Of a DNA stretch of 64,000 bases, positions 42,601-45,600 are shown piece by piece. Source of the stretch: Tubulanus polymorphus (lineage: Eukaryota > Animalia > Nemertea); the NCBI RefSeq assembly GCF_964204645.1, contig NC_134033.1:15756655-15820654 (forward strand). The letters are read 5' to 3'. The notes beneath the pieces are model-generated. The model did not search any database. It saw nothing but the letters and a program-made list of their open reading frames with translations, and was not told the origin of the DNA. The position numbers and the translations under genes are program-made. Position 1 is the stretch's first letter. Every line of letters begins with the position of its first letter.

Positions 42601-45600
42601 AAAAAAAGAAAAATTCTTTTGTGGAAAATTGATTTTATTTGATAAAGTTAGATTTATCATAAATGATATATTCTTTACTCGGTCGAAATTATGGCCCGAT
42701 TTATAAGTTTGACATCTCTTAAAATTAAGCAATATAAAGGAACATGAACGAAGTCAATCGGACACGTGCTGGGACCTGACGTCACCGTATGAGCAAGAGC
42801 CAATCAGACACGAGATTTTACCTACACCACAGCGGACGCTATCACTAGGATATTTGACCAAGAGCTGAATTATTTCATTTTCGATGATTTAAAGATTCAA
42901 ATCTTATATTGTTAACTCACACCTGTGCAACTGGGTTCTGGTTAATGCGACGTTGCGGTGACAGCCGGGCATGAGTTGGTACTTACATCAAAGTTGGCGG
43001 GGCTTGACTCCAGCCGTACAGACTGTGTACGTCATAGTGTCGGCTCAATCGATGCATGTGTTCAGGACAAAGTGTTTTATAATGTAAAACCGGACCGTAA
43101 ATCTCTGTAAGAAATACGTACAGAATTAGTAGCAAGTTTGGTTCATAGCATTTTTGATTTATTTTCGAATTGATTTAAGAATATTTCAAAATGAAACGTT
43201 GGACAAACAAGATAACTTAAAACCTTAAAAGCCCTGGGCCCAGTTGCACAGTCCAAAAGTGTTCTTACATCGTATGACTGGTCTTAAGTTGTTACGTAGA
43301 TTAGTTGTAGAACTAAGATGGTGTTAGGTGGTCTTAGACTGTGACGGTCATGTAAACAGCCCCAGAAGCCCAAACTCTCGCATTCATACACATTCATATC
43401 CATGTGACAGCCAAATAACTGATATCGTCATTTTCAATGATTCATATTCAATCATGGCGTCATCAAGATTCGGAATTTGGGTCAAGTTTTAACTGTAGTA
43501 ATTTGAGTATTAACTTACTGGGGAAGTACGGAGGATTGTTCCATTTGTTCCACGGACAGCCATCTTTTGTGCCCCAGTAGAAATTCGCCGGTTCGTTCAT
43601 ATCCTTGAAATAGAGAAAAAGAATAATTACAATGATGATAAAAATAATAATAACAATAATAATTGTAAAAATGATAATAATAATAATAATAATTGTCATT
43701 TATATAATGCAGGTATCCTAACGTCCAGAGTTAGTTCAAATGCGCTCCAAATTTGATATTTTTGGTAAAAAAGTAGTAATTTAATCAATTTATAATCTCT
43801 TTATTCACATAAAGTATCAGCAGCGATTACTTACAATCCAGAGACCGTCGTACTGAATCGTGTTATGAAATTTAGTACATTGATCTATCCACCATTTTTC
43901 GGCGTCGGGATTCGTGAAGTCCGGATAGTACACATTGGTCGGGGGCCATACCTATAATACATCGAACGGTAGCAGTCATGATTTATTATTTTACGTAAGC
44001 TTTGTAACACTAGTTCCATATAGTTATGGCTAAATCTCACTAAGTTTGACTCTACACTAAAACGAAGTGTCCCTGGTTAAAGTTAGTAAATTGCCACTGG
44101 TCCTGAATATTGTTCTGAATTGAAGAAGTGCCATCGGAAATAATCGAAAAAATGCTCTCTGAAACAGAGGACCTGGGCCAGCAACCTGAAACTGGGTCCT
44201 GGGAAAAAAAAACTGATGAATTTCTCCACCAGTCCGGCGGTGACTTATCTCCATTTAAATGAACGAAATGGTACTAGCACAGAGAACCACAGGGACTCGT
44301 ATCAGAGTTGTAGGTAGTGTAAAAACGATAATCTGTTAATCCTGTGTCTATAATGTATATACATCATAGACACTGGTTTTACAGATTTTATCATGTTCAC
44401 GTTGATCTGATACGAGGAGCCCCTGTGTAGAGAACTAGCCGGTACTGGACCCAATGGAACTAATCAGTTTCTCACCTTGCCTTCAACAGAAGTCCTGTTA
44501 TCAGCGTGTTTCACCCAGACGTCCAGTTTTTGACCTTCGATAAACGGTTTGTAATTCGGTTCACCGATCGCTATTGCCGGATCCTACGAAACAAAAAACT
44601 TTTACGGTGAAAAAAGATCGTTCATAATTAGATGGTAGAAGTGTTTCAAATGTGTATCCATCCTTCAAAGATCGGTCGATGCGAACAGGAAAATGGGGAA
44701 CTGCCAACGCTACTGCGGCGAGCAAGGATCCACCAGGTGTCGCTAGTAGTTACTCGGCCATGTACGTTCAATGTCTTCATACATTTCAGTTAAAATCGAA
44801 TTCAAACTTTTCTCTTAAATGAATCATTTAGTAACGCACACTATACCATAAACTGATGTTAGGTCGAGTGCGGATGAGTAATTTTACTAAGCCTGATATT
44901 TACCAGTATAGCAATGAATCGCATGCCCTTACTGTGTAACTGTCTGACGTAATCGGGTAGTCCGGCGTAGGTTTGATGATTGTAGGTAAAATCTAAATTC
45001 CTATCCATATAATCAATATCTCCAAATATATAATCCTACAATTAAAAGTAAACATGAATACCGCAAAAAGAATGGATGGAGTCTGAAATGTGTCCTTGTA
45101 ATATTATTGGTATTCCTGAAGATGACTATTAGGGAATAATAGTCGAAATGTCGAATAAACCATTAACTCAATGAAACATTTTGGACACTTTATCACCTTA
45201 TGGGATACCGCCAATGCTATTGTGGCAAGCGAGGATTCCACAAGGGTCGCTAGTGGCACTGGGTAACCGGGCTTTAATTACTTCTAGATTTCAATCGAAT
45301 TCGAGTTTCTCATTAGTGAATCAATTTTCAGTGAAATCTATTTCATAAAGCGTGTGAGAAAGCGGATCATATATCCATTTGATGACTCGTATGATAATTC
45401 TAGAATTTGGAAGCCTTAAGATTAAAGTTAAACGTTCAAATTTTATCCAAAATGAACTGAATTTCGTTACGAATGAAGAAGTGTTTTGTGGCGCCACTTG
45501 GTTGGTGGCGGTATCGCATTGCGGGATTTTATATCATCTTTACAACACGTACTCGGAGTGTTTCATCATTGGTTAATATACACACGTGTAAATGCCCAAT

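Follow-up and report, generated by a model that had tools for sequence, protein, structure and literature searches.

Metazoan Penelope-like elements (PLEs) carry minimal hammerhead ribozymes, which are recognized by a nucleotide inserted between positions 9 and 10.1, a G10.1-C11.1 pair, a long helix II and a helix III of one base pair (Cervera and de la Pena 2014, PMC4209133). In vitro, cleavage by a minimal motif on its own could not be detected (PMC4209133). Dimers are described as cleaving, weakly (PMC4209133; also the review PMC6765202, citing Lunse et al. 2017). For the only PLE examined biochemically, cleavage depended on the protein of the element and was dispensable for insertion in vitro (PMC11167929). 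We analyzed a stretch of 64,000 nucleotides from the nemertean Tubulanus polymorphus (contig NC_134033.1, positions 15,756,655 to 15,820,654 of the forward strand, referred to as the window), in which an earlier note had described an apparently intact minimal hammerhead inside an intron of a GH31 glucosidase gene. By direct reading of the sequence, we identified a complete minimal type I hammerhead on the + strand at 45109-45161. The region is very probably a decayed or dead-on-arrival fragment of a PLE tail which carries this motif.

The hammerhead motif and its closest relatives

All hammerhead elements listed in the earlier note for the + strand were found by direct reading. The 5' strand of helix I, GGTATTC (45109-45115, with the core TATTC at 45111-45115), is followed by C3-A9 of the catalytic core, CUGAAGA (CTGAAGA in DNA, 45116-45122), and by a bulged U between A9 and G10.1 (45123). 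Helix II (45124-45144) consists of an 8-bp stem, with GACTATTA at 45124-45131 and TAATAGTC at 45137-45144, closed by the loop GGGAA (45132-45136). G45124 pairs with C45144, which is the G10.1-C11.1 pair. Further, GAAA at 45145-45148 represents G12, A13, A14 and A15.1, and U and G (TG in DNA, 45149-45150) occupy positions 15.2 and 16.2. U16.1 (45151) and C17 (45152) complete the core, and helix III is cut down to a single A15.1-U16.1 pair closing a 2-nt loop. The 3' strand of helix I comprises GAATA (45153-45157), an AA bulge and CC (45160-45161), and in the minimum free energy fold it pairs with the 5' strand. All positions of a type I core (C3 U4 G5 A6 N7 G8 A9, G12 A13 A14, A15.1-U16.1, H17) are present, and they were aligned with high posterior probabilities to a covariance model built from other copies of the family (see below). 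Cleavage is predicted 3' of C45152, exactly where it had been proposed, according to both the direct reading and the model alignment.

The minimum free energy fold of the 57-nt monomer consists of helix I and helix II with an open core (-13.1 kcal/mol), and a 122-nt stretch adopted the same fold (z = -2.7). The range given previously, 45079-45190, contains the motif but is wider than it, and 45079-45109 is not demonstrably repeat. The cleavage triplet of the window copy is GUC, a favourable one, while the parental element and the tandem arrays mostly have GUU. Helix II is 3 nt longer than the family norm; such an extended stem is present in 6 genomic copies only, with a different loop in each. 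Helices I and II of the window copy are predicted to be stronger than those of the parental copy.

The motif shares with metazoan PLE hammerheads (PMC4209133) the type I topology, the complete core, the bulge, the G10.1-C11.1 pair, a helix II of the 6-8 bp class and the A15.1-U16.1 pair with a 2-nt loop, which is palindromic in the family. As in those systems, the motif is found in both terminal repeats of elements encoding reverse transcriptase (RT) and a GIY-YIG domain, in thousands of copies and in several covarying subfamilies per genome. Its assignment to the minimal type I hammerheads of the PLE class was thus borne out by the bulged nucleotide after A9, the G10.1-C11.1 pair, the long helix II and the 1-bp helix III. 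Unlike the described motifs, the window copy has U at 15.2, which breaks the palindrome, and it is a lone tail fragment of about 100 bp without an open reading frame (ORF) or a partner. It is a textbook PLE minimal hammerhead, whose only private differences are U at 15.2 and the longer helix II.

Poseidon PAc of Anolis carolinensis (PMC11167929) provides a second comparison. As in PAc, the hammerhead of the parental element overlaps the start of the open frame: at locus L075 (element at L075:1678-4591) the motif occupies 1678-1733 and the frame starts at 1705, inside it. Insertions with a 3' 'tail' are also common to both. Protein-assisted cleavage and internal initiation of reverse transcription were demonstrated biochemically for PAc only, whereas the element of this genome is known from its sequence.

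Metazoan non-LTR (lacking long terminal repeats) retrozymes and hammerhead satellites (PMC7229834; newt satellite 2, Schistosoma Sm-alpha) likewise have type I motifs with a weak palindromic helix III, organized in tandem repeats. Their counterparts in this genome are arrays of the same motif with 69-bp and 167-bp units. In retrozymes, however, at least two hammerheads are needed for the release of a unit, and in place of two or more tandem units the window holds one isolated copy. Therefore no unit-length or circular RNA is to be expected from this locus.

The amniote hammerheads HH9 and HH10 of Rfam resemble the window motif in being located inside introns of protein-coding genes. They are canonical monomeric ribozymes with tertiary contacts, which lie in sense orientation and are conserved across species. 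In contrast, the window motif is minimal, antisense and repeat-derived, and it is not detected by the HH9 and HH10 models.

Family membership, covariation and parental elements

A search with the 33-nt core returned one match, compared with none in 100 shuffles. The covariance model, R1, was built from 29 other genomic copies representing at least five subfamilies, and the window copy was excluded from it. The best R1 match in the window was 45107-45163 (63.2 bits, E = 1.9e-14). In the genome-wide R1 search 150 candidates were scored, all saturating near 76 bits; therefore we used pattern counts to estimate copy number. The loose pattern CTGANGA-N10-40-GAAACGTC matched 1329 times in the 268-Mb genome, compared with 26 matches for the reversed control.

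The hammerhead models of Rfam gave no match at gathering score in the whole window and none at E<=10 in 44800-45500. The same scan equally missed the intact parental hammerhead in L075, and therefore the silence of Rfam is no evidence against the motif. The Rfam hammerhead models do not cover the PLE minimal class. The earlier note had proposed a search with hammerhead models; it was positive with the custom model and gave no match with the Rfam models. A small custom covariance model cleanly recovers a class that Rfam misses.

Stem covariation among genomic copies had been named beforehand as one test of the motif, and it is present. In the 29-copy alignment 84% of the cells in helices I and II were paired, in comparison with 30-36% when the partners were slid by 1-3 columns. 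Compensatory changes on both sides were observed in 10 out of 11 pairs, and none of 500 shuffles reached the observed covariation score; the covarying changes fall mostly between subfamilies and so represent few independent events, but the pattern agrees with the description by Cervera and de la Pena. Covariation of both stems extends across at least five subfamilies. All 29 rows contain CUGANGA and GAAA, the columns of the window core are invariant among them, the G10.1-C11.1 pair occurs in approximately 90%, and at least 90% have T as the bulge, the remaining rows having A.

Subfamily A, that of the window copy, has helix II GACTAT / ATAGTC and helix I TATTC / GAATA. In subfamily B these are GATCTC / GAGATC and ACAC / GTGT, respectively. 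Subfamily C combines helix II GGCTAAC / GTTAGCC with a short helix I, which has 3 bp in the L068 copy, and the remaining subfamilies have either GGGTGG/CCACCC or a 3-bp GAT/ATC as helix II. We also observed two divergent PLE hammerheads, at L074:4975-5023 and L072:1164-1217 (-). One of them has a bulged A instead of U and only 3 bp in helix II, and the other has helix II GGGTGG/CCACCC and an AUAU helix III palindrome.

The motif lies within a fragment of approximately 97 bp (45110-45206, + strand) from the 3' terminal repeat (pseudo-long terminal repeat, pLTR) of a PLE, the pLTR tail. BLAST of 45110-45191 gave 84-88% identity to dozens of other genomic copies, and 45111-45206 is 78-80% identical to the pLTRs of the full-length PLEs L073, L075, L076 and L079. 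The 3' limit, 45206, coincides with the ...GGGAT end shared by other solo copies. No other PLE homology was found in 44500-45900, and the 624-nt intron contains no RT and GIY-YIG ORF.

A search of the genome for the GIY-YIG domain found at least 150 places, many of them in intact frames of 817-841 aa. Three ORFs were scanned (841, 817 and 820 aa), and all of them combine RVT_1 with GIY-YIG, which is the PLE architecture. The ORFs of L073, L075, L076 and L079 are 828-841 aa long, and both domains were confirmed on the L075 ORF. In L073 and L075, hammerheads of the same subfamily lie on both sides of the ORF, in its orientation and 2858 bp apart. L079 has a hammerhead only 3' of the ORF, and in L076 an inverted copy takes the place of the 5' one. 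Other PLE families have hammerhead versions of their own, one in L077 and L078 and another in L074. Since homologous copies flank RT and GIY-YIG ORFs in this genome and the hallmark features are present, the proposed Penelope-like origin of the motif holds. Long ORFs at the first 60 hammerhead loci encoded no PLE proteins.

Several PLE families (L073-L079) have intact 817-841-aa frames in many copies of identical length, in tandem or in head-to-head pairs. This arrangement suggests that PLE families of this genome were recently active. Of interest is the genome and not the window copy: several of its PLE families are apparently active and have distinct covarying hammerheads, and it also holds relics by the thousand and tandem arrays. 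It offers good material for the question of what PLE hammerheads do.

Tandem arrays with one family-A hammerhead per unit, mostly with GUU, were observed at L026:46-1960 (69-bp period), at L002:827-1550 and in L006 (167-bp period) and in L014 (about 120-130 bp). Family-A hammerheads also often form head-to-head inverted pairs 40-140 bp apart (e.g. C1:1110973-1111051). Such pairs correspond to the inverted-copy arrangement known for Penelope insertions.

The 5' limit of the fragment lies between 45068 and 45110. We aligned 45030-45109 as an inverted partial copy or as further pLTR, and the alignments were weak, with 5 to 327 of 500 shuffles scoring equally. An 18-nt inverted repeat (45081-45098 / 45169-45186) is 78% complementary. 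The 10-bp sequence ATACCGCAAA at 45058 is repeated directly as ATACCGCCAA at 45205, with 9 of 10 positions identical. By our own estimate this is approximately a one-in-ten chance event, and we do not claim a target duplication at 45058/45205.

Origin and activity of the window copy

The following course of events would account for the fragment. A PLE, or a short non-autonomous derivative copied by PLE machinery, would have inserted into the GH31 intron by target-primed reverse transcription. With heavy 5' truncation, only about the last 100 bp of the terminal repeat would have been left, the stretch containing the minimal hammerhead. In the parent element both terminal repeats contain the hammerhead, which lies immediately 5' of the open frame with the RT and GIY-YIG ORF and overlaps its start. 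By analogy with the studied PLEs, the multimeric transcript of the element would be cut only when two copies pair through ACGU into helix III, and the protein of the element would probably assist this cleavage. The window copy has kept helices I and II and all core bases and has lost the palindrome, most simply by a C to T change at a CpG.

The contrast between an ACGT consensus and ATGT in this copy, already pointed out before our analysis, agrees with genome counts. Among 1657 family-A copies otherwise matching exactly, 1614 have ACGT and 43 have ATGT. AUGU is a minority state and is most simply explained as a C-to-T change at a CpG. The family state C,G at 15.2 and 16.2 (1614/1657) gives the palindrome ACGU for a dimeric helix III, which the U,G of the window copy does not form. 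For ACGU the predicted energy of the helix III self-duplex is -3.1 kcal/mol, whereas no duplex is predicted for AUGU. With one A-U pair and an AUGU interface, helix III of the window copy is predicted to be unable to form either in cis or as a dimer. The copy was previously called apparently intact; this is true of its catalytic core, but not of the 15.2-16.2 palindrome needed by the dimer, which the C-to-T change ruins.

In the R1 search of the 64-kb window we found no tandem partner for this copy, and the nearest copy on the same strand is 1.7 kb away and has a mutated core. This second family copy (46852-46905, +) lies in another intron of the same GH31 gene, also antisense, and has CUGUAGA and GAAACUUU (R1 33.6 bits, E 2e-6). 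The third copy (23743-23796, -) has an intact core and ACGU, a GUU triplet and one A.C mismatch in helix II (R1 57 bits, E 1e-12). With 79% identity to the full-length element and 84-88% to dispersed copies, the window copy is old; it is also solitary and slightly damaged. Since the palindrome is lost, there is no partner and single minimal hammerheads were inactive in published work, we infer that its cleavage in place is unlikely. The copy also stands on the strand opposite to the only evident transcription unit, and most likely it has no activity.

Several points weigh against a dead fragment of a truncated PLE tail. That the copy most likely does nothing is something we infer only. The monomer fold given above (-13.1 kcal/mol) is unusually stable, and it is exactly the hammerhead secondary structure. 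A helix III of tandem U.G/G.U pairs may form, or a heterodimer may form in trans with an ACGU-bearing RNA. The 5' limit and the possible target duplication are not significant alone and are only suggestive. Further, the closest relatives of the window copy are dispersed and satellite copies (84-88%), not the autonomous element (79%), and its immediate source may be a non-autonomous derivative.

An alternative is that one unit of a repeat derived from PLEs, either non-autonomous, retrozyme-like or satellite (the 69-bp and 167-bp tandem families), landed here, in which case the fragment would not be a 5'-truncated autonomous copy. We consider this possible, although rather unlikely. The higher identity to dispersed and tandem copies is in agreement with it, many solo copies begin right at GTATTC, arrays of both unit lengths exist (L026, L002), and a 2026 preprint derives animal retrozymes from PLE pLTRs (10.64898/2026.07.22.740005). 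However, the window copy runs beyond the 69-bp unit into the pLTR tail, to ...GGGAT at 45206, like 5'-truncated PLE tails do, and its larger distance from the autonomous element may reflect just age or an extinct subfamily. The distinction changes little, because both routes use the same machinery.

It is very unlikely that the motif is a working ribozyme in place, which would cut a + strand antisense transcript of GH31 either as a monomer, or aided by PLE protein, or paired in trans to other PLE hammerhead RNAs, and whose orientation would be kept by selection. The fully intact core, the favourable GUC triplet and the stronger predicted helices I and II speak for such a role, and the many intact ORFs make it probable that PLE proteins, which can assist cleavage (PMC11167929), are expressed. 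Against it stand the lost palindrome and the solitary position of the copy, the inactivity of single minimal hammerheads in vitro (PMC4209133), the decay of the neighbouring copy in the same GH31 gene and the lack of evidence for + strand transcription at the GH31 locus.

Intact sense copies in introns elsewhere argue against selection on orientation as well. At L045 an acetyl-CoA carboxylase gene has a fully intact family-B hammerhead (ACGU, GUC; 1490-1543, -) in an intron between collinear exons, and the orientation is sense. The upstream exons, 2143-1955 and 1861-1697, match CPSase_L_D2 positions 90-143 and 152-202, and a downstream exon within 1084-503 matches Biotin_carb_C and then the ACC BT domain, both below Pfam cut-offs. 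An intact sense copy at L054:1490-1543 (-) stands upstream of collinear glutamate-receptor exons, with an upstream ANF_receptor match below cut-off, and the gene of the DNA primase large subunit probably has a further sense-oriented copy (L049). L028 (OATP) and both copies in this GH31 gene are antisense; the sample of orientations is very small and non-random. It does show that a copy with an intact core can be tolerated in sense orientation. With such copies inside introns of other genes, no constraint on orientation is visible, and the idea put forward in the earlier note, that an antisense orientation spares the pre-mRNA, is not supported as a rule, given the acetyl-CoA carboxylase copy.

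Also very unlikely, in our opinion, is that intronic hammerhead relics as a class show an orientation bias caused by selection against cleavage of the pre-mRNA, or that the window copy is competent in trans with the abundant PLE hammerhead RNAs or with PLE protein and cuts an antisense GH31 transcript.

Finally, a chance resemblance or another RNA, such as a C/D-box small nucleolar RNA (snoRNA), is refuted: the Rfam hammerhead models remained without a match even at E<=10 and the top Rfam match over the region was the snoRNA sn2991 (17 bits, E 3.7), but the gathering score of sn2991 is 60 bits, Rfam misses the canonical parental hammerhead as well, and the motif has homology to a family with over 1600 members, with an R1 E value of 2e-14. 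We regard this and the other weak snoRNA matches as chance level.

The preferred reading, a fragment of a PLE tail, has a consequence for annotation. Masking should treat the region as a fragment of a Penelope-like element, and the motif does not count as a host ribozyme gene.

The host gene and other observations

The location of the motif, antisense in an intron of a GH31 gene, was confirmed exon by exon; the exons were searched singly against profiles. The host intron (45036-45659, - strand, 624 nt, GT...AG) has the donor gttagt after ...DIPH and the acceptor ttgtag, and the distance between the hammerhead and the 3' splice site is 73 nt. The exon preceding this intron (45660-45785, -) matches PF01055 profile positions 3-38 with 27.2 bits, above the cut-off. 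The downstream exon (44904-45035, -) matches positions 48-83 (14 bits, E 0.031), which is under the 23.5-bit cut-off but collinear with the previous exon. The exons further upstream gave a weaker match to the GH31 N-terminal domain (15.4 bits, under the cut-off). The first coding exon (47539-47994, -) encodes two trefoil (P-type) domains (PF00088, 93 bits) behind an apparent signal peptide. A signal peptide with two trefoil domains is found in enzymes of the lysosomal alpha-glucosidase or sucrase-isomaltase type.

A short repeat is present in the same GH31 intron at 45523-45575, with approximately 90% identity to L013:1427-1479 and 1594-1642. In L013 this repeat flanks a hammerhead fragment on either side, as might result from a long target duplication or from insertion into another repeat.

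Elsewhere in the window, 22344-22829 (+) contains a 161-aa open frame composed of repeats of about 12 residues (PTQLWNWVPSQI...), and the opposite strand has a frame that is just as open. The sequence is probably a minisatellite and not a gene.

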